Positions 38,465 through 57,473 of a stretch of 64,000 bases of DNA are shown piece by piece. The notes under the pieces were generated by a model. The model did no database searches and was not told the DNA's origin. It saw nothing but the letters and a program-made list of their open reading frames with translations. Made by a program: the position numbers and the translations under genes. Origin of the DNA: Fonticula alba ATCC 38817 (Eukaryota; Protista; Nucleariida). Position 1 is the stretch's first letter. Each line of letters starts with the position of its first letter. The stretch lies in NCBI GenBank assembly GCA_000388065.2, contig KB932202.1, one strand, 5' to 3'.

Positions 38465-41400
38465 ATGTCCTGGGGCTCTGAACTCTGGGTGCGTGGTTCC
38501 CCCCTCCTCCGGGAAATGGCCGGATGCCCGCCTGCATGTGCCATCTCTGTGGTTCCCCGCCGCACTCAGCACAGCGCTGCTGCTGTGGACCTGTTCTTCC
38601 TTCTCTTCCTCTCTCTCTCTCTCTCCCGTCTTTCTGGCCCTGACGCCTGTTCTCCCTGCCACACGCAAAACAGGACAAGTTCCGCGAGCTGGACCAGGTG
38701 ACCAAGGAGAACTCCGACTCGGTCAGCAGCTTCGTGGACTTCCTCCGGAAGAAGGCTGCCCTGGACCTGGAATACTCGCGCGGTCTGCAGAAGCTGACCA
38801 AGGCCACCCTATCGATGGGCGTCTTCTGCGGGGAGGCTGTAACCATGACGCCCGGGTCCTCCGGCGGCTCGAGCTCCTTCGGGTCTTTCGGCCTTGGGCA
38901 GTCATCGAGCTCCGGATCGACCAACCCCAAGTCGCGCATCACTTCGCGCATTGACGAATTCCGCAGCACGACGTGCGTATTTGGGTGCATCTGCATGTGC
39001 ACACCCACCCACATGCACGATGCATGCCGTCGGCTCCACTCACAAGCTCCCTGACTGACATGCGCCCTGTCTCCAATGGTCCCGCGCTCGGTTAGCTCCC
39101 TGTCGACCGCGCTGCGGTCCATGCTGCAGGAGACCTACGAGGCGGCCACCTGCATCGAAAGCCACTCGATCACGCTCAATGACGAGGCTGCCGACCTGAG
39201 CGCCAAGCTCCTGAAGGATATTGAGGCCCAGCGCAAGTCGGTGCGTTTGTCCCTCCCCCCCTCCCCCCTCGGTGTTGCTGGTCACATCTCGCCCTATTTT
39301 TCTCCTGCGCTCAGACTGACTCCTCACCCCATGTGTCTTGCCTCCGGCCTGTTGCAGATCAACAATGAGTATGACTCCAAGAAGACTGAGCTTCAGAAGA
39401 ACATCAAGCAGCTGGAAACCTACCAGAAGAACTACCACTCGGTGGCCAAGGAGGCTGACCGCGCACTCGCTGCCTTCGAAAAGGTGGAAAAGGACCTGAA
39501 GTCTTCGAAGTCCGAGCTGGAGAAGGTTCGCCGCCGGTGCCATCTCACCGTCCACACTTGCGTTCCCCTGCTGTGGCCGCTCACCCCCCTTCTCTTTGCT
39601 TCCCTTCTCGTCTTCTCTGCGCTCTTTTGCCGGCCATCCCTCCCCTCTCCCTGGCCCTTTGTCTTCCTCGGCTCCTGCCTCGGTGCAGGCTACCGCGGCC
39701 TACCGTGCTCAAACGGAGAAGCTTCGAAATGCCGAGGAGTCGTACGCCTTCATCCTGGAGAAGACCAACCAGCACCAGACCCGACACTACCGCGAGGAGA
39801 TCCCCAACATCATCAACAGCATCCAGCAGCTGGAGATCGACCGGATCCTGCGCCTGCGCGAGGCCATCCTCCTCTACTCGGATTCGTATCTGCTCCAGGC
39901 ACCGAAGATCGTCACTGCCTTCGAGAATATTGCCCTGCTGGCCGGGTCCATCGACGCGGCATCCGATTGCCAGGTACGCCACCGGGGCCCACCTCCGGCC
40001 CCCCCGTGTGAACCGGCCTTAGTGTCTTCGGTCCTCTCCGCCTCCTGACTGTGGTGAGCTTTCGCCCTTTGTCTGCCCCCCTCTCCGCCTCTGCCCTCCT
40101 CCGGTGCAGATCTATATCGACGCCTTCGCCTCGGGCGGCGCATACCCGCCGGACATGGTGTTCGTGCCGCACCGCGTGGGCGCCCCCACGCCGGACTCCT
40201 TTGTGGCCTTCTCCTCGATCGGTGCCGATCGCCTGGGCCCCGACGCGGCTCCCGGCTCCGGCGGGCCCTCCGGCACGGCGGCATGCTCTTCGACGGCCGA
40301 CTTGACCCCGGCCACCAAGCGCTGGATCGACTTCGCCGACCATCCCCTTTGGATGGACCCGGCCTCCGGGATCGTCACGCCGGAGGAGCAGGCCGACATC
40401 TTGCGTGATGAGGTGGCCCGCACGCACTTGGAACTGATCTCGCTGGAGAAGGCCCGCTGGGCCCTGCTTGACCTGCTGGTCGAGTCGTCAAAGCGGGTGC
40501 GTGCTGCTATTCCCACCGTCCCTGGAGGGCGTTCGCCGGGGGTTCGCCACTGGCCCAGGTCCCGCGGAGGGCGTCCACCGGGCTCCTGTTCTTTGGGTCT
40601 ACTTTCTCCCTCCTTCGCCCTTTCCCTCTGCCCCCCCCCCCCCCCCCCGGCCGTGCCATGTTTTGACACTCAGCCTCCACTCCCCCCCTCTTCCACATAC
40701 GCGCATACGCCCCTACACCCAGGGCGACCCCTCTCCCTCGGTGCCGGTGCCCAATTCACATGGCACCCAGTTGCTCTCCTCGCGTCTGGAGGACATTGAG
40801 GAGCAAATTGACTCCTTCACCACGGAGCTCTACCGGTGCCAGTGCTTCTTGGCGGCGCTGGCTGGGACCCGGCCGCCGGATGGTCCCATGAGCCCGGAGG
40901 AGCGCCGGCAGCTGACGCTGGCCTCATCGCAGCACCACCTTCCGGCGGCCTCGGTCCATGGGCCAGGCACCAGCGACGCGTACCTTCACTCGGCTGCCGC
41001 CCACAAGACGGCGGTCATGGGGTCCGGATTGCGGGGGCTCCAGGGCACCGGCAACCGGGGCTACATGACGATCGCCACGCACTCGACGTCGGGGCAGGCC
41101 GGGGCCATGCACCGGGGGGCCACCACCGGCGGCGGCTACACCGCGGGCGGCCTTGCCGGAGGCGGGGGCCCTGCGCGCGTGGTGGTCTCGGTGGGCTTGA
41201 ACTCGGGCCACGGATCTGACGGCGGGACCTCCTTCTCGCCGCCGCCCTCGCCCGGGAACACCGGGGCCTCCTCGCACCACAAGCACTCGAATTCCGGCGG
41301 GCCGCTGCGCGACGTGCTGACCGACCTGCACACCCTCACCCCGGCGGTCCGGGCATATGGTGCGTATCCCAGCCCCCCCCCCCCCCCCCACGTGGCCATG

Positions 41401-42029: not shown

Positions 42030-43511
42030 CTAGCTACAGCAGATGGTCAAAAGCGAGGCCGGGTAGGTCCCATCGGGCCCGGGCGCGGGAATGTGCATGG
42101 TATAGGGAGCTGGGCGCATTGGCAGGGCCGGAGGGATCCACATCAGTGTGGCTGTGTAAGAGTGGGGCAAAGAGAAGGAGGAAGGAGGCCCTGATGGGCC
42201 CCCTTGCCACATCGGCGGTGGCGTGGGTTCTCGTGGCGGATGAATCGGGCGCACCACTGGATCCGGGTCGCCAGAAGTCCAGGCAGTTTCGGAATATCCC
42301 CCTATCGAAGGGCAGCACGCCATCTGGCACGGCCTTCATGTATGGCACGCGCTCTGGGGGGGGGGGGAGGGGGACATGCGACGGGAGGAGAAGCACCACC
42401 ACGCCATGGGGCCGATCGTCAGTAGGAGGGTGGAAAAGGAAAGAAGGAGAGCAGGCAGAGGGGGCCCAGGAACAGGTGGCAAGCACGCACGCGACGCATG
42501 CTCCCAGGTTGTCTGCGCCGTGGCGGCCAGGAAGAGATGGAAGAAAAATAGCCCAGACACCAGGACCCCGAAGACCAAGACCAGTCCGAATAGGGCCAGG
42601 GTCAGGTAGTTGGAAAGGACCCAGGCCATGGCGTAACTGGGCCCGGCCAGGTCCTCCACACGGAAGAGGCGTCGCAAGACCAGCCGGCCGAACGACCCGG
42701 GCGGCTGGAGCATCGCCGCCAAGAAGGGCAACAACTGCAGGAGCATGGTCCCTAGCAGAGCGCAGAAGATCAAGAAACTCGGGTGATTGGCCTGGCCCAC
42801 GCAGTTGCCGATGAAGGAGCAGTGGTGATCGAAGCGCCGGACGCAGCGCCGGCAAGACCGGCAGTGCCGGGCGCGCAGGGGCATCGGCGACTGGCAGGGC
42901 TCACAAAAAGAGACATCCAGGGCCGGAGCCAAGCCCGAGACCACATGGGCCGGGAGCAGGGGCGATGCCCCGGCTGGGGAGGCCCGGTGCCGGGCCATCC
43001 GATTGGCCCGGAGCCAGACCTTCAGTCGGACCGGCAGCAGGCGCCGGACCCGGCGGGCGAGCCATTGGCCAGCCGCAACCAGCGGCCGCGCGAATACCCA
43101 GCCCGATCGAGCCACGGATGGGGGCCCGTCCGGGGCCCTGGAGGGGGGGGCTTTGGCCAGGAGCACCTCCGGACCGGGGGCCGTGAATCCCGGATCGGAG
43201 TGAAGCAGCACGAAGTAGTGCCCCGCGCAGAGGCCCATGTGCAAATGCAGGTACATCGTGTAGGTGGAGCCTCGGTCGAAGAAGGAGGACCCGCAGTAAA
43301 AGGCATACAGGAGCCCGAGGAGGTGGGCCGCCACGTAGAAAGTGGCCGCGGCGGCCGGATTATGCACCAGCTTCTCGCCAGTGATCTCCAGCTCCTCCGT
43401 GGCCAGGGGATCCTCCCTGGCTGGCGGTGAGCCCGGCCGGCGGGCATAAAACTGCCTCAGGGTATCCTGGTATTGGGAGTGGATTTGCCGCTCGGCATCG
43501 GGAGAGATCAT
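42030..43511 (-). CDS. DHHC palmitoyl acyltransferase (ZDHHC12/PAT10-like); exact 3' end uncertain
   Basis: [41 protein letters not shown] cysteine-rich domain, TTWE (TTxE) motif, and next exon [16 protein letters not shown]. Flanking TM segments present. Confidence 0.93.
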
Positions 43512-45328
43512 GTCCGGGTGCGGCCCCGAAGAAAGCCTGCGGGGGGTGTGGTGGGGGCCCTTTTTCCGTCTTCCGTTGCTGTTGTTGCTTTGCTGTTGTT
43601 GCTGTTGTTGCTGTTCAGAAGAGGGATAGGAGGGATGCGCTGCACGTCCGGTTGCGATGGCTCATGTTGGCGCCCGTCCTGAGGGCCGAGAAGCGAGCAG
43701 GGTAGACGGAGGGACAGAGAGATAAGGGGGAGTGGGGGCGACGGATGGCAGATGCGCGGGCGGTGGTGACGGGACGGGAGGGTGCGGGCTTGAATGGGTG
43801 AGCTCCCTTGCGTCCGGGCGAGGTGCCTTTCGGAGCGGCGCCCCCTCGGGGTTGGTCGCCCCTCCCCCCAAGGCCCAGGGAAGCCCCACGACTTCACGAT
43901 GCCCATGGGAGGCGACTACTCTCTGGGGGGGGGGGGGGGGGGGGGGGATCGACGGGCCTCCTTGTGGCTCGGGGGGATTCCCCTGCGGGATCTTCACGCA
44001 GATCTCGCTCACGGCGGGAGACCGGCCGGGAGGCCGGGGGACGGCGGCCGGCAGGGCCCCGTCCTTGGGCTGGCAGCTGGCCGGGCTGGGCGATCGATTC
44101 CGTTGGAATGTGTGCATTTCCGGGGCGCCGCGAAAAGAATGCAGAAATTACGTGTGGGCGGGCGCAAATACGGATGTCAAATGGCGTTACATGCTCCTAA
44201 AGGAGCATCGCGTCTTGAGGGTTGTTCACGAGGGTTTCTCTCAGGGGCGGCTGGGGAGCCTTGTCCTGCCCCGCGCCCAGTGTGTCCGTGCCCTCCCCAC
44301 TCCTTTTGTCCACCTCCCGGGACATCGACCGGGTGGCAGAGGCCCGAGGCAAGTCAACCACCGTGTGAGCGGCCCCTCCGTCTTTGGTCCCCGTCGTGCG
44401 TGGCAGCTGGGGATGGTGGGGGCGGGGGGGGGGAGGGGGGGGGGGGGGGGGGATGTGTCATCAGCCAGTCCAGCCCTCGGACCGGTGGCATGGGTGGGGA
44501 GCTCTCCGTGCCGGCGCACGCGCTGCCCACCCCGTGCCTGTTAGAGGCGCGCCCCGTTGCCCCCTTGTCGGCCGTTGCGTCGCGTGGGTGTGGTGGGGCC
44601 TTCCGCCGGCCGCCGGCTCGCGGCCCTCTTCCCGGTCCCCCCCCCCGGTGGCGTTTTCCCCAAATGCGCAAGTGGGAATGAATCTCGCTGTGGGGAGGCA
44701 CACGTGTGGGGTGTGTGGGTGTGCCCGCGGCGGGCGTCCCGCGTTTCGAGCGCCGCCAGCTGCCTGGGGATGCCCGGCGCAAGGGTGCCCTCTGTATTGG
44801 TCACCGGCCGGGGGGGGGGGGGGGGGGAGCGGGAAAAATGGTTGGCTTTTCATGTGCGTCTGGGCCTGGTGTGGATCTCCAACCATGCGGACTTTGCCAC
44901 CCTGGGCTGGGACGAGCACGAGAGGGGCGCAGGGACACACGGGCCGAGGGGATGTGCGAATTTTTCGGCGGCCAGTCGCCTTGTCAGCCTCCCCCGCTGG
45001 CCCTGCATCCCCCCCCTCGAGAGATTTGTTGCCACCCCCACAAACACTCTCCCCCCCCTTCTTTGTACCTCTCCCCCCTGTCCTTTCTTTGTTGACCCGC
45101 TCGCCCTTGCCCCCCCCCCCCCCCCCGTGCCTTCTTCTGTCTCCCTTGCCACATGACTCCTTTGCTGCCGCTGCTGCTCTTTTTGCGCCTCCCCCTGCTA
45201 TGCATCTTTCCCTTCCCGCCCCATCTGTCACTTGCGGTGGTCCTGCCCCTCCCTTTCTGCATGACTGATGGCCATCCTCCTTTATCTTTTCCCCCGTTCC
45301 GCCCTCCCCCGTCCTTGTTTCGAAGACC

Positions 45329-47480
45329 ATGAGCTCCGAGGACCTTGCTTCTATCCAGGCTGTGGCCGACGCCCCCGTTGTCCAGGACATCGCCTCCGAT
45401 TCGGAGGAGGCCATTGTCGAGACTGTTTCCGAGACCACCGAGGTCGCCGAGGAGGTTGCCGAGGAGGCCGCCGAGGAGGTTGCCGAGGAGNNNNNNNNNN
45501 CGCCGAGGAGGTTGCCGAGGAGGCCGCCGAGGAGGTTGCCGAGGAGACCGCCGAGGAGGTTGCCGAGGAGACCGCCGAGGAGGTTGCCGAGGAGACCACC
45601 GAGGAGACCACCGAGGAGACCACCGAGGAGACCACCGAGGAGGCCACCGAGGAGATCACCGAGGAGACCACCGAGGAGGCCGCTGAGGAGGTCGCTGAGG
45701 AGGCCGCTGAGGAGGTCGCTGAGACTACCGAGGAGACTACCGAGGAGACTACCGAGGAGACTGCCGAGGAGACTACTCAGGAGACCACTGAGGAAGCCGC
45801 CGAGGTCGCCGAGGAGGTCGCCGAGGAGGTCGCCGAGGAGGCCACCGAGGAGGTCGCCGAGACCGCTGAGACCACCGAAGAGGTCGTCGAGGAGACCATT
45901 ATGGTCATCGAGGAGACCGTTGTGGTCGTTGAGGAGACCGTTGTTGTCGTCGAGGAGACCTCCGAGGAGGTGGCCGACGTCGCCGAGGAGGTCGTCGAGG
46001 TTGTTGCCGACGCCGTTGACACCACCGAGGAGGTTGTCGAGCTCGATGCCCCTACCATTAGTGCGACCATTGTGGACACCGTCGTCGAGACGGAGGCCGT
46101 CGTCGAGATCGCCACTGTCGAGGACGAGGAGGAGGAGATCATCATCTCCTCGACCGGCGCGCCGGAGGACGACGCCGACATGAATGTCGATGACGCCATG
46201 GCCAAGGCCATGGTGGATGCCATCATCCGCGCCGCCGTCATGGCCAAGGCCGAGGGCGCCCCGGCCGGCTCTTCCGTGGTCCTGTGCGCCAACCCCTCCT
46301 TCTGTCACGCATGCGCATGCATCATCATCCGCGCCTTCCCCTTGCTTGCTTCTTTCTCCCGGCCTCCCCCTCTCCCCCTATCTCTTTCTCTTTCCCTGGC
46401 GCGCGCGCCCCCCCCCCCACTAATGGTCTCCTTTTCCTTCCCTCCCTCTCCCCCCCCCAGTGATGAGGATGACGCTGGCAACACCATCGTTGTGACCATG
46501 CCCGCTGGTGCCGGTGCCGGTGCCGGTGCCGGTGCCGCTGCCCCGACTGCGCAGTTCACCGTCGTCGAGGCGGAGGATGCCGAGGACGAGTCCGAGGAGG
46601 AGGTCCAGGAGATTGTCCGCCCGGCCTATGGCCGCGCGCCGATCAAGTCCCTCCTGCGCGCGCATGATGACTCCGAGACCGAGGAGTCCGACGACGATGA
46701 TGATGATGACGATGAGGACTTCGGCTCTGATGATGATGATGATCTGGATGAGAGCGACGAGCATCTTGCCCTGGAGTTCGCCGAGATCGATCTTGATCGT
46801 GACATCGCCCGCGAGACCTTTGTCGATCGTGTGGTCGCCCTGCGGGACATCGTGCCGCTGAACGTTCGCCGCCAGATCGGCGACGTCATCAGCCCGGTCA
46901 CCGGGGCCGTGTCGTCGATCACCTCTTGGGCTGGCTCGGCCGCCTGGTTCGCCGGCACCTTCGCCGCCGTGGTCTTCATCCCCTTCGTTCTGTCGATGGA
47001 CCGCGAGAACCAGCTGAACATGGCCCGCGAGCAGGAGGAGCGCATGCAGATGGAGCAGCGTGTACGTCCTCATGCGGGCGCTCTCCCCTCCCTGCCTTTT
47101 TGCAAAACCCGTCCATCATGCTGCCCTCGCATCTCTCGTCGCCCCCTTGGCCCTGCCTCCTTCGCTCGACTGACGTCTGTTTTGCCCTACTGTCTTTCTC
47201 CTTTTCTCTTTTTCTCCTTTTTCTCCTTTTTCTCTTTTTCTCCTTTTTCTCTTTTTCCCTTTTTCCCTTTTTTCTCTTTTTCTCTTTTTCTCTCTTCCTC
47301 CTTTTCTCTTTTTCTCCCTTCCGCCTTTTCTCTTTTTCTCCCTTCCGCCTTTTTCTCTCCTTCTCTCTCCCCCCCTCTCCCCCTCTCTCCCTCCACACAT
47401 AGTCCCTCATCAACACCAGCGTCAACCCCTCGGTGGCCACCAACGTCTTCGGCTCCCCGACCCTGCCCGTCTCCAAGTAG
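45329..47480 (+). CDS. TOM22: Mitochondrial import receptor Tom22 with a very long acidic repeat N-terminal extension
   Basis: Core ETFVDRVVALRDIVPLNVR..SAAWFAGTFAAVVFIPFVLSMDRENQ matches the Tom22 pattern (yeast ETLLDRIVALKDIVP..LAWTLTTTALLLGVP..EQQ, as recalled). Exons ~45329-46283, 46461-47061 and 47403-47480. A 10-N gap lies inside exon 1. Confidence 0.88.
45440..45860 (+). repeat. Coding 12-nt tandem repeat encoding EE[TAV][TA] units
   Basis: Repeated gaggag(acc/gcc/gtt/gtc)(acc/gcc) units, translating to AEEVAEEAAEETTEE... Confidence 0.93.
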
Positions 47481-50595: not shown

Positions 50596-50814
50596 TCACG
50601 CACCACGAGACTGTTGCTGAGGAGTAATCCTCCCACCCGCGGTGGTGGTGGACGGCGACTTGCGGTGCGCCTGGGCACGGCGGCGATGGCGGTCATGGTC
50701 GCGAGCCTGGTCATCGACCGGCGGCAGCCCGGCATACCCACGGGCTGATGTCGACGTTGGCATGGTTTGCAAGATGGCATCGGCCTCGGCGTCGGGGCTC
50801 CAGCGCCAGGCACC

Positions 50815-50874
<60 letters not shown>

Positions 50875-52722
50875 CGTGGTGGGACTGTTGCCGGGGTTCG
50901 GAGGGGCGGACATGCGGCGACTGCCAGCCGAGCCGGAGCCCGGCTGGGCGTCCATCTGGTTGGCGCGGCCTGGCGCCGCCTGGGCCGAGGCCGCGGGGGC
51001 GGTGTCATGGCCATGGATGTCGGCCTGCTGCGGGCAGCACTGCTCCTCTTCGTCCGCCCCCCCGTCCGAGTGCTGGGGCCGGGATGGGGCTGCTCCACCA
51101 TGGTGGCCGAAGGTGGTGGCCACATTCTCACACTGAGCCAGCGGATCCAGGTCCAAGCCGCGGCCGCTGTCTCCGGACAGGGAGGAGCTCTGGCTGTCAA
51201 TGCCAGGGTGCTCGGCAGCATGGGGGCTTGTGTCCAGCTCGTCCTCCATCGGGGGCTGGGCAAAGCGCTGGGTTGCCGGATTGCCCGCGCCCGAGGCTTC
51301 GGCGGCGGCGGCGAGGGCGGCCGCGGCCGTCGGCGACACCGGCCCCGAGGGGATCAGCTGTTCTTGCTCCTGCTCCTGCTGCGAAGGGACGAGCGACCGC
51401 GGCTGCTGGCCAAAGGGAATCGACTCACCCGGCGGCCGGAGATGCCCTCCTGCCGGGGGCAATGATGCAGGCATGGCCGAGGGGCGGGGCCCCGGGGCAA
51501 AGCGCCCGCCCGGGCTACCCCGCTGCGCTTCCAGCTGTTGCTGCAGGCGCCCGCGATGGGCCGCATCGCCGGCGCTGAAGGCCGCCCGGCACTCCTCATG
51601 CTGGATGGCCATCTCGTCGTCGGTTCGCCGATGGCATACATGCGAGAAGTGCTGCTCGCCGCCGGGGGGGACCATCCCCGGTTCCGCTGCAGGTGCGGCC
51701 ACCATTGGTGCTGACGTCGCACCGGCGGCCGGGGAATCCCCACGAGAAGCGGGGGCGGCGGCTGCCGCCGGGGGGCCGCCACTGCTGCTCTGCACCGAGG
51801 ACGGCAAGCTTGCCCTTTGCAAATAATCCTCCGAGTCTGGCAGGCCAAAGAGACGCTCCGTGCTGCTGGTCGGCCCGCGGCCATCCGGCGACCGGCTCAC
51901 GTCCGAGAGGACCTGATTGCGGATGCAATTGGTCGGAAGGGAGCAGTTGTGCATATTCCGACCCGGGCCCGGGCTCTTCTTCGATGACAGGGGTGGCAGC
52001 GGGGCCGCCAGCCGGGAGGCCAGACGCGACCCGCCGCTGCCGCCAGTGCCGAAGGCGCTGCCAGTCTGCCGCTGGCACTCGACCAAGACCAACGCATCGT
52101 CATCACCATCAGCACCGGCCGTGACGACCGAGGCATGGATTGCCACACGCTGGGGGGCTGCTGTCATGTCGGGGGCCGGGCGCCGGCCAGAACCGCCCGG
52201 TTGGCTGAGGGAGGTTTGGTGCTCCCGCTGCGAGTGGTGATGATGATGGTGGTGGTGGTGGCGGTGGCGGTGGGGGTCCGGCTGCTGCTGGCCGTCGCCG
52301 CCGTGGGGACGGCCCCGGTGGCGGGCGTCCGCCTCGTCGGCCGAGTGGCCCCGGGTGGCGATGGTGTGGGAGGCTGTCGACCCGGCGGGCGGGGACGACA
52401 GCCTGCCAGCAGCAGCGCCGCCCGGCCCGATCTTGATGACATGCTGGTGGACCGGGCATTCGATCAGGTCATTCAGTTGGTCGGAGGCCGAGCTCCCGGG
52501 GCCCATGCCATCCGGCGCCGTGCCGCTGTAGCAGAAGGGCGAGGAGTTCTTTCGGAAGGGCTTCAGCGACTGGGGCTGATTCGACATCTGGTGAGTCTCC
52601 GAGCAGGGGGACAGCGATCTCGAGGTGGCGAGCTGCTGCACCGGCGGTGGCTGGGCATCTCCCCCCCTGCGGCGGGAGGTGGGGCTGTCCGCCATCACGG
52701 CGAGACCGTACCGGCTGCTGGG

Positions 52723-52761
<39 letters not shown>

Positions 52762-55700
52762 AGTGGTGGTGGTGGTGGCATCGTCAGCACCACCACGACC
52801 ACCACCACGGCGGCTTCCTCCATCACGCGAGGGCTGCTGCTGTTGCTGGGACGGCGGCGGCGGCGGCGGCGACGGCGCCGACGCGTATGCTTGCGACTGC
52901 ATCTGGCGGGCGGCGCCGCTGGGGCCGGCCATCACCGAGCTGCCGGCAGCATCCTCAGCCTGGGGCTGGTGGTGAATCTCCAGGAACCTGTTTCCCCCGG
53001 TGCTCGGGGGCGGGCTGATCCGTCCACCTGCATGGGGACAGGTCGACCCGCGGCCAGGGGACAGCGGCCCGCAGGTGGCCGGCCCGGCCGCCTGCTGGCG
53101 ATGCTGCTGGCACCCCCCCGGGCGCATCGGGCGGAGCTCCATCGGAGTGGCCATCGGGCCGTCTACCAGGCCGTCGATGGTGGCCCCGACCGAGTGGCGC
53201 CGGGCAGCCGGCGACCCGGCCCCTGGCGCCAGGGGGCCCTGGGGCGAGACATTGGCATCGCCATGGCGCCACTGACGCTGCTGCTGCTGCTGCTGCTGCT
53301 GCTGTGCAGCGGCCTCAGAGCCGGGCCCTCTGCCGAGGGTGGGCAGCAATTCGGGATTGGATGTCTGCTTGCGGCCGAGATTGCGCATGACCGTGGCCGA
53401 CGGCTTGACCATGCGCTCGCCTGCGCCGGCGGTGGCGGCGACCGCGGCCGCGGCGGGGCCCGATGCGGCAGAGGCCCCCGGCGATCCGTACGTCGGGAAG
53501 GATGTCCGCCGGGCCTGGGTCGTGGCGGCCGGCGGGTTGCGACCACTTGCCGGGTGATACATTGGGCAGGAGGTCTGCCGAGGATCGCCGGCGGCCATTG
53601 GGCTGCCTCCAGACCCATCGGTGGCGGTGGCGGCCTCGGCCCTGCGCGGGGCCCCGCCCATGGGGCCTGCCGTGGCGGCGGTGCCGGCCGTGGTGGTGCC
53701 GGCCGTCGGCATGGAGGGAGACAGCACCGACGACGAGGAGGAGGACGGCGAGGAGCCCGCACCCGAGGTGCTGGGGGTGTAGTAGCCGCCGCGGCCGCCG
53801 CCGGGACGGGCGTCAGCCCGGGCGCCGGTGGCCGTCGACGAGGCGGGCGCCGCGGCCGCCTGCCGAGCTGGCGGCAGGCCGCCCAGCTGGCGCGCGGCCA
53901 GGTGCGGGTCACCTCCGGTAACCATGCTGCTGCCGCCGCCGGCGGCGGCGTCATTGACGGGCGGCGGGGCCCCGCCCGGCATGCGGGGGGCAGCTTCCGA
54001 GCCGGCCATGCGCCCGGGCGACACCGGCATGGCGCTCGGATCGCCGGCCATGCGGTCCTTGTGGGAGGTCGGGGCCGTGGTGGCCATCGGCGGCGGTGGT
54101 CCGAAGCCAGCGCCACCGGCCGCCGCCGGCGGGAGGCTGTGCAGCTCGCGCAGCGTCTTGTGCTGGGAGGACTGCCGGTCGGGGGCCGGGATCGGCGGCT
54201 GCGGGGCCGGCACGGCCGCCTGGCGGGCATCCTCAATGTGCCCGAAGGCATCGTATTCGTGCATCGGAGGGGTGTCATCCTCGTCGTGGGCCATCATCAT
54301 GGCCATGCGCGAGGAGGCCGGGTCCCCCCCCCCCCGGTGCGAGCCATGCCCATGGCGGTGATGGTGCTGCTGGTGGGGCGCCGGGCGGTCGCCGGCGACG
54401 GCGGCCGCGGCAGCCGCCGCGGCAGCCGCCGCCTCCGCGTCGGCCTTCTCCCGCATCTGCACCGATCGGCGGCGGTGGTTCAGGAAGTCATTGCGCGCCT
54501 CGCAGCGACAGAGGACCGGATCCAAATTGAGGCAGCCGGTGGATGCCGCTGCCCTGCCGGCTGGCCCCCCCCCGGTGGCCAGGTCGGCATCCAGCTGGGG
54601 CTGGCCGCCGGCCTGGCGCTGGGCCCGCTCGAACTCCTCCAGGCAGCAGCACCCCTCGAAGCTCAGCGGCCGGAGCTGCCACCCATGCAGGTACCCGCTC
54701 CAGGAATCGGCATTCAAGGCCTGGCGGCGGTTTTCCGCCTCGCGGTCGGAGGGGTCCTCCACACGGATGAGCTCCCACGAAGACCAGTAGTGCGGGTCCG
54801 GCTTGAGGGTGATCACTCGGGTGCGGTTCTGGAAGTCCACGGTCGTCAGGCGAAGGTAGGTGCTGTCGACATCGGTGTCCACCACCGGCGACGAGGGCGG
54901 CAGGAAGAAGGAGGCCCGGTCGGCGTGCGAGGCCGGCGGCTGGCGATGGTGGCGCTGGGCCGCCTCGTCGTCCTGGCCGGCGGCCGGGGGGAGGCCCCGG
55001 CGGTGGGCGGAGTCCTGCTCCAGCTGGCGCTTGCGCTGCAGGCGCTCATACTCGGCCACACGGCCCTCGGTGGCCTGGCGAATGGCCTCCACGAAGGAGT
55101 CCAAATCCGGGCAGGGGAACCCATCGCAATCGGTGATCCACACCGTGGCACGGAGCCCGTACATCTGGGCCGGCGAGCCGGTCGACCACCAGGACGAGTA
55201 GACCCCCCCGGGGGGGGCCGTGCGCCGGAGCTGGAACACCGGCCGGTGGGGCTGCTGCAGGGCCGCACCAGCCCACAGGATGACACGCTGGGTGCCGATG
55301 GTGTTCACCTCCACCAGGGGAATGCGGAAGGACATGACCAGCCCATCGCGGAGGATGGTCAGCACCACCTTGTTGGGCTGCTGCATGCGCATCGCGGCCA
55401 GGCGCTTGGCGGTGATGTGGCCCCCGCCGCTGCCATTGACGCCGGAGCTGCTGCCGCCGCTGCCGGGGCGCCGGTGCGGCGGCCGCTCGGCCCCCTCGTC
55501 ATCGGCCGCCGGGTAGCCGCCGCCGACCGGGGCGCCGCTCTCATCGTCGGCCGACGAAAAGGCATAGTCCTCCTCGTCGGTCAGCGAAAGGGCCTCCAAA
55601 TCCGAGGCATTCAGGTCCAGGTCGCTGTGATCACTCAGGTCCGAGGCCATGGCCTGGTCATGGAGGCGGAGCCAGGCGCGCTGCTTGCGCCGGCGGTGCT

Positions 55701-56824
55701 CCTCGCGCAGCTGGCGCACCATGTACCCATCGAGGCCGTCGCCGCCCTGGATGCTGGCCCGGCGGGCGGCCTTGGCGGCGATGGTGGCCGCGCGGGCCGT
55801 TGGCGAGGGCGGCGGCTGGCCCGGCGCCGGTCCCGTCACCCCGATCGAGGGGGCCGCCGGGTGGTGGCTGTCCTCGGCGGCCAGGCTGGCCGAGTCCGTG
55901 CTGGAGGTGGGCTGCTCGCGGCGCGAGCGGCGCTTGATCCGCTCGCGACGCTGGCGCCGGCGCTGCTCCCGCGTCTCCAGGTGGAACTGCTCCAGCACGC
56001 CGTCTCCCAGGGAGCCGATCTTGCCGCCGGGCGGGCGGCCGCCAGGGGGGGCACCGGCCCCGGCCCCAGTCGCCTCCCCGGTGGCCCGGAACAGCTCCAA
56101 ATCCGTGCTGCTGCGCCACCCCTCGCGGGACACATCCTCCGGACGGGGCAGGAGCACGGTGTCATCGCACTCAATCCCGGCCGTGAAGTCCCCTTGGAGG
56201 ACACTGTCCAGGGCCCGGGCCGTGGGCACGATGCGGCCATCGCACGCCAGGATCAGGTCGCCCTCGCGCAGGCACATGCTGGCCGGGGTGCTGGCCGCCA
56301 CGCGGCGCACCGCCAGCAGGCTGTTCCGCCGGGGGTTGGCCCGGGCAATGAGGGCCAGCCATTCATCGCTGACGCCCAGGGCGCGGGCATTCAGCACGGA
56401 GTTCGGCCGGACCTCCACCTCCAGGCTGAAGATCTTGGGCACGCGCACGCGCAGGTCATTGGTCTGGCGGCGCTGGCGCCGGTGTTGCTGCTGCGGGCGC
56501 GGCACCCGCTGCCCCGGGTCCGAGTCGTCCATGCCCGACGGGGTCGGGTCATCGAAGTTGGCCGTCATGCGGCTGACCACCGGCTGGATGATGCCGGACG
56601 GGATGCCGGCCCACAGCTGGGCGTCATTGCCGTCGGAGTCCTGGAAGGCGAAGGAGGCCCAGAAGGCCCGCATGCGCCCGGTCACCGGGCACAGCAGGAC
56701 ACCACCATCCGCGCGGGGGGAGTTGTCCACATCCACCACGTCGATGTTGGTGGCGCGGTACCGGGGGGGGTTGGTCTCGCGCAGGAGCAGCTCATAGGAG
56801 TTGGAGATGGTTGTCAGCCGGAAG

Positions 56825-56901
<77 letters not shown>

Positions 56902-57473
56902 TTGTCGGCGCAGGGCAAGGGCACATGGCCGGGGGTCCCCGTGGGGTTTTTGCGCGCCACAGCATCGATGGTCGTCGAAGTTGCGAAGGGAAGCCAGGGC
57001 CGGGCAGGGCAGGGGCGGGGGGAGGCGGCATGAGGAGGTGTTAGAATCGTGTGGGAGACTGGCAGGAGCGACAGGCCGCCGGCAAACCTTCCGCCAATGG
57101 AGGAGGAGAATGCACGGAGGTCGCCACCAGGGGTGGAGGAGAGGAGGGGGAAGGGAGGCAGAGAGACGCACCAACACGCGAGCCATTCAGGCCCACAAAG
57201 AGAACCCTGTCACCCTGCTCCAGCTCGCCGGACGTTTTAAGTGCATCGGCCGAGAGAGCGGCATTGGCCGCGGCCTGGCCGCTGGTGAGGGTGTTTTCCA
57301 GGCGACAGATCTCCTCATCGGAGGCCAGATCGCAGGAGATGGGCACCCGGCCGCATGTCTGACCGGGGAGCTCCATTTCCACCTCCTCCACCGGCGAGTC
57401 CAGCAGCAGACGCGGATCATACTGAATGATGACATAGTTGTGGTTCGGGTGGATGAAAACTGCGCGCGCATGG

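Follow-up and report, generated by a model that had tools for sequence, protein, structure and literature searches.

Does a single gene at positions 45329-47480 on the plus strand of the window (the whole 64,000-nucleotide stretch of Fonticula alba contig KB932202.1 analysed here) encode a Tom22 with more than 400 residues of acidic sequence in front of its conserved core, and if so, does all that sequence serve a function? To our knowledge, just two TOM subunits are universally conserved. Tom22 is one of them, and debate about what its acidic cytosolic head does goes back to the 'acid chain' hypothesis. Should the long protein be produced, its head would be more extreme than any other natural one in this survey and would provide a natural test of whether the charge and length of the head matter. 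A repeat-inflated disordered region of this kind also matters for genome annotation and for studies of protein-size evolution. The analysis presented here indicates that the locus most likely holds a member of a well-known family that is new in its size and architecture, and in which a repeat expansion has been tolerated.

Gene model and Tom22 core

The model of the gene consists of three exons and two introns. Exon 1 (45329-46283) encodes 40 EEXX units and Val/Glu-rich sequence. Its first part (45329-45490) opens with an ATG at 45329 that has an A at -3 and contributes 54 codons, of which 37 are non-repetitive and the remainder form the first EEXX units. An assembly gap of 10 N (45491-45500) follows inside the 12-nt repeat array, and the part beyond the gap (45501-46283) holds 260 full codons, counted from 45502, and two nucleotides of a junction codon. 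Intron 1 (46284-46460; 177 nt, GTGCGC...polyC-CAG, phase 2) leads into exon 2 (46461-47061), whose 200 full codons begin at 46462 and run in order through twelve codons between the acceptor and an internal ATG at 46498 (DEDDAGNTIVVT, 46462-46497, with a coding-like codon score), a (Gly-Ala)6 tract at 46507-46542, clusters of Asp and Glu, and the Tom22 core. Intron 2 (47062-47402; 341 nt, GTACGT...CATAG, phase 0) contains a C/T-rich microsatellite, and exon 3 (47403-47480) supplies 25 codons of intermembrane-space tail and the stop codon TAG at 47478-47480. The ATG at 45329 is the first one past an in-frame stop located 21 codons upstream. Further upstream, a DHHC-type ORF on the minus strand (42336-43511) points away from this gene, leaving 1.8 kb of promoter space before 45329.

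Judged by its sequence, the core encoded by exon 2 is a genuine Tom22. Exon 2 matches Pfam PF04281 with 68 bits (gathering score 28.7; E 1e-18) across profile positions 9-135 of 141, and six distinct solved Tom22 sequences match it with E values from 2.6e-10 to 5.9e-07. The acidic cluster of yeast-type Tom22 is present as an Asp/Glu run directly before the cytosolic helix motif ETFVDRVVALRDIVP (46813-46857). That motif, placed by translation and by alignment to residues 54-124 of yeast chain 8hco_B, fits the ET-L-x-E/D-R-x-x-A-L-K/R-D-I-x-P helix just before the membrane-proximal segment and aligns to yeast Tom22 residues 54-70, with residues about 56-70 as its counterpart; the E, R, A, L and P columns of the helix are invariant in alignments of 11 and of 12 sequences. 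Here the helix to which Tom20 and Tom70 bind in yeast is kept as ETFVDRVVALRDI. A single transmembrane helix, WAGSAAWFAGTFAAVVFIPFVLS in translation (46927-46995), carries the conserved Trp, Thr and Pro of the family, the W82, T86 and P94 columns being invariant in alignment A1. Beyond the membrane, the Gln/Glu-rich end of exon 2 and the 25 residues of exon 3 make up a short C-terminal intermembrane-space domain according to the predicted splice, and the NVFGSP of exon 3 resembles NVFGAP, which the best relative (P0001) carries in its tail. The conserved working parts of the protein (acidic cluster, amphipathic helix, transmembrane helix and tail) would lie in exons 2 and 3. Homology suggests that this core works as it does in fungi, as an anchor beside Tom40, with which the proline-containing transmembrane helix would bundle, flanked on the cytosolic side by the amphipathic helix that in yeast binds Tom20 and Tom70 and displaces precursors, and on the other side by the intermembrane-space tail.

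Size sets the predicted protein apart. Ahead of ETFVDR the model places 54 residues from before the gap, 260 from after it, one junction codon and 117 residues from exon 2, which gives 432 plus whatever the gap contains. In the 430 residues that were counted, with the junction codon and one flanking residue excluded, 160 are Asp or Glu and 8 are Lys or Arg, for a net charge near -150. For the long protein the calculated mass would be about 57 kDa, with a pI near 3.3; a short form would have about 22 kDa. The first-pass annotation had described a hyper-acidic, repeat-built domain of about 430 residues ahead of ETFVDR, and with at least 432 residues, 160 of the 430 counted being acidic, that description holds. 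So does its placement of an EE[TAV][TA] array and further Glu/Asp/Val-rich sequence in the frame of the Tom22 core, which repeat detection with TRF and translation both confirm. The protein is most likely some 3.5 times the usual Tom22 size, with an extra front exon adding about 315 residues. Tom22 proteins are typically about 100-200 aa long with a head of about 20-100 aa, and this one, at 540 aa or more with at least 432 before the motif, lies outside both ranges; the Pfam family is not defined by size, so membership stands. Nor does it have the short cytosolic domain lacking acidic clusters that characterises plant-type Tom9 and ATOM14.

An exhaustive HMMER search of 1.84 billion representatives, a collection that is without this Tom22 and from which other eukaryotes may be absent too, returned 246 relatives, the protein itself not among them. 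The best 150 of these 246 are 86-296 aa long and have at most 202 residues before the motif, most of them 20-60; the named relatives are fungal Tom22s from Hypoxylon, Gaertneriomyces and Syncephalis. A scan of metagenomes for close relatives with the same architecture came back blank. The spliced model was searched exon by exon, and word-indexed protein searches gave zero matches with the whole of exon 2 as query, which was swamped by low-complexity words, with the core within a 520-aa straight translation at a length window of 286-910 aa, and with the core within exon 2 at a length window of 110-350 aa. None of the searches in the two protein collections recovered an annotated or transcript-derived copy of the protein, long or short.

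Coding signal, splice sites and the assembly gap

Whether exon 1 belongs to the same gene as the core was addressed with codon log-odds that compare in-frame codons with those of the remaining five frames and that were derived from the DHHC ORF and an ORF of 2196 aa, two further genes in the window. In the proposed frame, every part of exon 1 (the non-repetitive segments 45329-45439 and 45880-46281 among them) lies between +0.45 and +0.66 bits per codon, and the same frame gives +0.58 for the Tom22 core and +0.63 for exon 3. Before the gap, the other five frames of exon 1 reach at most +0.12; after it, the array scores +0.66 and the non-repeat part +0.50, with the other frames ranging from negative values to +0.3. 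A sliding codon profile is positive throughout the post-gap part of the exon, and both the 300 nt upstream of 45329 and intron 1 lie at about 0 in all frames. The EEXX frame contains zero stops from 45329 to the Tom22 core, and only a splice could therefore let exon 1 end as a separate gene. For the twelve codons preceding ATG 46498 the in-frame score is +0.51 bits per codon, while the other frames give -0.61 and -1.14; among 1199 non-coding windows from the surroundings of the gene, only 0.17% score as high as +0.51 (p about 0.002).

The donor of intron 1 follows the local splicing grammar. All five introns examined in the window, both Tom22 introns included, obey a GTNCGY donor rule, as seen in three of three introns of an F-BAR-like neighbour gene, whose donors are GTGCGT, GTTCGC and GTACGC. 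Between ATG 45329 and the point where the coding signal ends, GTNCGY occurs only once, at 46284, and joining this donor to the first AG past the polypyrimidine tract keeps the frame. The intron-like segment of 177 stop-free nucleotides that had been proposed to link the two parts is thus recovered at 46284-46460, with a GTNCGY donor and an in-frame splice. Its length is a multiple of three and it is free of stops in frame, and retention would also keep the frame. The lack of stops was itself considered as evidence and set aside, two of the three frames of 46284-46460 being open.

The assembly gap lies within the repeat array and was counted among the signs of recent slippage. Taken literally, the 10 N would carry the frame of ATG 45329 on past the gap as PRRLPRR to a stop at 46183, and the EEXX frame beyond the gap would be offset by one; this literal continuation scores -1.18 in codon log-odds and was rejected. 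In the EEXX frame the score is +0.52 bits per codon up to the gap and +0.66 beyond it. The 10 N represent a placeholder length, and the true gap must be 2 mod 3 nt to keep the frame and 2 mod 12 nt to keep the repeat register. GAGGAG lies in phase 5 (mod 12) ahead of the gap and in phase 1 beyond it; for the array to run on without a break, the gap has to measure 2 mod 12 nt, and such a length restores the frame as well. Both flanks bear the same 24-nt repeat in the same coding frame, and continuity across the gap, though unread, is strongly implied by the sequence on its two sides. Of the two uncertainties that the first-pass annotation had attached to the gap, the one about repeat length stands; the other, about the frame of the first ~55 codons, gives way, as codon usage and repeat register favour the EEXX frame on both sides. 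Sequence from 45501 to 47480 is gap-free, so at least 378 residues before ETFVDR are physically contiguous with the core.

These observations can be weighed against two other readings of the gene. Translation from ATG 46498 would yield a short Tom22 of about 213 aa, with 105 residues before the motif, as the real or main product, and exon 1 would then be a leader or a separate transcript. The context of this ATG (ACCATG) is as good as that of ATG 45329, the AQFTVVEAED that follows it weakly resembles the conserved N-terminus of fungal Tom22 (MV-x-L-T-E-V), and 213 aa falls within the 86-296 aa spanned by the best 150 of the 246 relatives. However, exon 1 is clearly coding and in frame yet has no stop of its own, which a separate gene would need, the codons just before ATG 46498 are coding-like, and the sequence between the end of exon 1 and that ATG, a mere 214 nt, looks like an ordinary intron with a consensus donor. 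We therefore regard a short-only Tom22 as unlikely, while a normal-sized form of 213 aa is plausible from the sequence as an ancestral or alternative product, and a short isoform beside the long one is possible. It is far harder to accept that the long frame is an artefact, arising from a wrong scaffold join at the gap or from a phase-0 donor that would make TGA the first triplet of exon 2 (46461-46463) and so end a separate acidic protein. The gap does lie inside a repeat, where scaffolding is least reliable, and a phase-0 donor such as GTGGTC at 46276 would indeed place a TGA as first codon after the acceptor. Against this, the two gap flanks agree in repeat and in coding frame, no error in the join could detach the 260 post-gap codons of exon 1 from the core, and GTGGTC breaks the rule that five of five examined introns obey and that 46284 fits; we consider this reading extremely improbable.

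The long gene model is made probable by the coding frame, the consensus in-frame splice sites, the absence of a stop and the coding-like codons ahead of the internal ATG. With considerable confidence, we read the locus as one three-exon gene that would encode an opisthokont-type Tom22 of at least 540 aa, and the long mRNA and protein are probably made. Four sequencing runs from 2012 hold 57-61% of the sampled words of the stretch, a share that cannot separate the long model from the short one.

Origin and possible function of the extension

Tandem repeats make up much of exon 1. The array that TRF detects at 45440-45861 has a period of 12 nt (35 copies, score 303), and a 21-nt repeat with a VVEETVV-like translation lies at 45882-45960. 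A 21-nt probe taken from the 12-nt array has 9 matches against 0.03 expected by chance. EEVA (11 units), EETT (8), EEAA (5) and EETA (3) lead among the EEXX units in translation; the EEXX array reaches to about 45861, and sequence rich in Val, Glu, Thr and Ile follows the 21-nt repeat. Units are grouped into blocks, which are identical or show synonymous differences only (GTT GCC, ACC ACC four times, GTC GCT, ACT ACC), and the array contains runs of identical 12-mers and 24-mers. Blocks of this kind are a signature of recent local amplification, and on this sequence evidence the EEXX array looks evolutionarily young.

The product of exon 1 has little that would suggest a folded domain. Pfam gave no match on exon 1, and an Atlas look-alike search with it gave no usable match. 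AlphaFold2 predicts long low-confidence helices for exon 1 without a tertiary fold (pLDDT 58.8, pTM 0.23), and the extension is best read, from such modelling, as a disordered and non-globular polyanion. An Ala-rich amphipathic stretch at 46189-46260 bears the only three basic residues of exon 1, which are also the sole three Lys/Arg of its post-gap part (45501-46283). A hydrophobic-moment scan for a second functional helix did not discriminate.

What is known of the acidic head in model fungi bears directly on what such an extension might do. In yeast, deletion of Tom22 residues 2-54 has minor effects only, and electrostatic binding between Tom22 and presequences is seen at 20 mM KCl and gone at physiological salt; the essential yeast element is instead a transient helix, E55-D68 ('PPDE'), that binds Tom20 and Tom70 (PMC12871108). 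In Neurospora, growth was still rescued when 15 of 18 negative charges were replaced, as Nargang 1998 is reported in PMC5240110. The first-pass annotation had pictured the extension either as a long polyanionic antenna for presequences, one that might offset divergent or absent Tom20 and Tom70, or as a tether or spacer at the mitochondrial surface. The extreme charge (160 acidic against 8 basic in 430 residues) speaks for the antenna idea, as does the extension's cytosolic location on a receptor with an acidic patch that binds presequence at low salt. The idea sits poorly, however, with an acidic region that is dispensable in both yeast and Neurospora, with binding that is abolished at physiological salt, with an array that looks young and with the conservation of the Tom20/Tom70-binding helix, which, judged from its sequence, argues if anything for receptor partners being present. 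An adaptive antenna or tether is very unlikely in our estimation. Of the earlier proposal of a giant Tom22, the single gene is thus retained, on the strength of its coding frame, its splice sites and the lack of a stop, and the antenna function has weak support.

Other functions can be imagined for the extension. Some 315 residues of polyanionic brush on every Tom22 could alter the approach of precursors, ribosomes or organelles, or the stretch at 46189-46260 could be a second, presequence-like element with a receptor-binding or autoinhibitory role. We hold a functional extension of either kind to be decidedly unlikely; were the element at 46189-46260 to prove real, it would extend the newly proposed 'displacement' mechanism of Tom22. 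At physiological salt, where an acidic patch of yeast size loses its electrostatic effects, a net charge near -150 could preserve them, and a residual electrostatic or steric effect of the extension may persist.

We favour, as the likely explanation, a slippage-driven and tolerated expansion of a disordered region within one Tom22 gene of at least 540 aa. Exon 1 would have added about 315 residues or more ahead of the apparent ancestral N-terminus, built by recent amplification of 12-nt (Glu-Glu-X-X) and 21-nt units through replication slippage or unequal crossover. Because the acidic head of Tom22 is disordered and dispensable, growth by slippage would be least costly there. The extension appears to have arisen, and to be kept, mainly by relaxed constraint and not through a new receptor function; we infer that it is neutral, and at most it might act as a charged entropic brush above the import pore.

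Comparison with known Tom22 proteins

The Tom22s of Saccharomyces cerevisiae (152 aa; PDB 8hco, 6ucu, 6jnf) and Neurospora crassa (PDB 8b4i) belong to the same Pfam family and share the plan of the core described here. In both, as in this protein, an acidic cluster stands directly before an ET-x-x-D/E-R-x-x-A-L-x-D-I-x-P helix, a transmembrane helix with a conserved Pro follows, and past the membrane there is a short Gln/Glu-rich stretch and then a short tail. The proteins differ in what precedes the motif, which amounts to at least 432 residues here compared with about 55 in yeast, as read from the alignment, and about 40 in Neurospora. The excess consists of tandem repeats on a separate upstream exon, and identity within the core is only 30-40%.

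A second comparison is with the longest-headed relatives among those listed, namely P0146 (296 aa, from a JGI metagenome and named TOM22), P0007 (244 aa), P0033 (Syncephalis, 222 aa) and P0094 (214 aa). The head of P0146 partly looks like an over-extended ORF. The N-terminal regions of these relatives are variable, acidic and low in complexity, as is the one described here, and variable acidic heads of this kind show that the region expands and contracts freely within the family. Unlike this protein, these listed relatives carry 202 residues or fewer ahead of the motif and lack a tandem EEXX array.

At the other end of the family stand the short plant-type Tom22 (Tom9) and trypanosomal ATOM14, in which the transmembrane segment and its flanking core are homologous and the acidic cytosolic cluster is missing; it is this cluster that separates yeast-type from plant-type Tom22 (PMC5240110). 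With respect to the acidic head, the Tom22 predicted here occupies the extreme opposite to Tom9 and ATOM14.

Donor sites in a neighbouring gene

An F-BAR/FCH-like gene on the plus strand (39076-40130), recognised from its translation as judged by eye, is interrupted by three short introns whose donors read GTGCGT (39242), GTTCGC (39526) and GTACGC (39975). All three introns end in GCAG at the 3' side, and the three donors together provide an independent check on the unusual +4C donor rule of this genome, under which introns begin GTNCGY.

The upstream region shared with Tom22

The minus-strand ORF at 42336-43511, 391 aa long, carries a DHHC-Cys-rich motif and probably encodes a palmitoyltransferase; a look-up in the protein collection for exact copies of this ORF found none on record. 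The DHHC ORF and the Tom22 gene (45329-47480, plus strand) are divergently transcribed and have about 1.8 kb of upstream DNA in common. Poly-G and poly-C runs are abundant in this shared region, the long ones including about 18-20 G at 44811-44828 and about 20 C at 45107-45127.

Repeats, low-complexity sequence and gaps

Within the Tom22 gene, a plus-strand (GGTGCC)6 microsatellite at 46507-46542, just after the internal ATG at 46498, is translated as (Gly-Ala)6 and forms a second repeat inserted in frame into the head of Tom22, smaller than the first. Most of intron 2 consists of a C/T microsatellite (47195-47366, plus strand) of the TTTCTCTT type, with periods of 8 and 25. Further along the window, a 2196-aa ORF on the minus strand (50596-57186) represents another very large protein in which low-complexity sequence is abundant, with His-Thr repeats encoded by (CA)n and runs of poly-Gln, poly-Ala and poly-Gly. 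A 1588-aa ORF lies antisense to it at 52135-56901, as is typical for such GC-rich composition. The window as a whole contains 2831 N, and assembly gaps therefore exist beyond the Tom22 locus.

The closest relative of the Tom22 core

Among the matches listed, the closest relative of the conserved Tom22 core is P0001, a protein of 192 aa with 36% identity, located at 1-1065 of L001, a transcript-like Logan contig of 1065 nt from run SRR32944841. Its N-terminus, MAAAAQKLVRVVAEDG, bears a faint likeness to the Fonticula sequence that follows the internal ATG at 46498, and its acidic head is of normal size.
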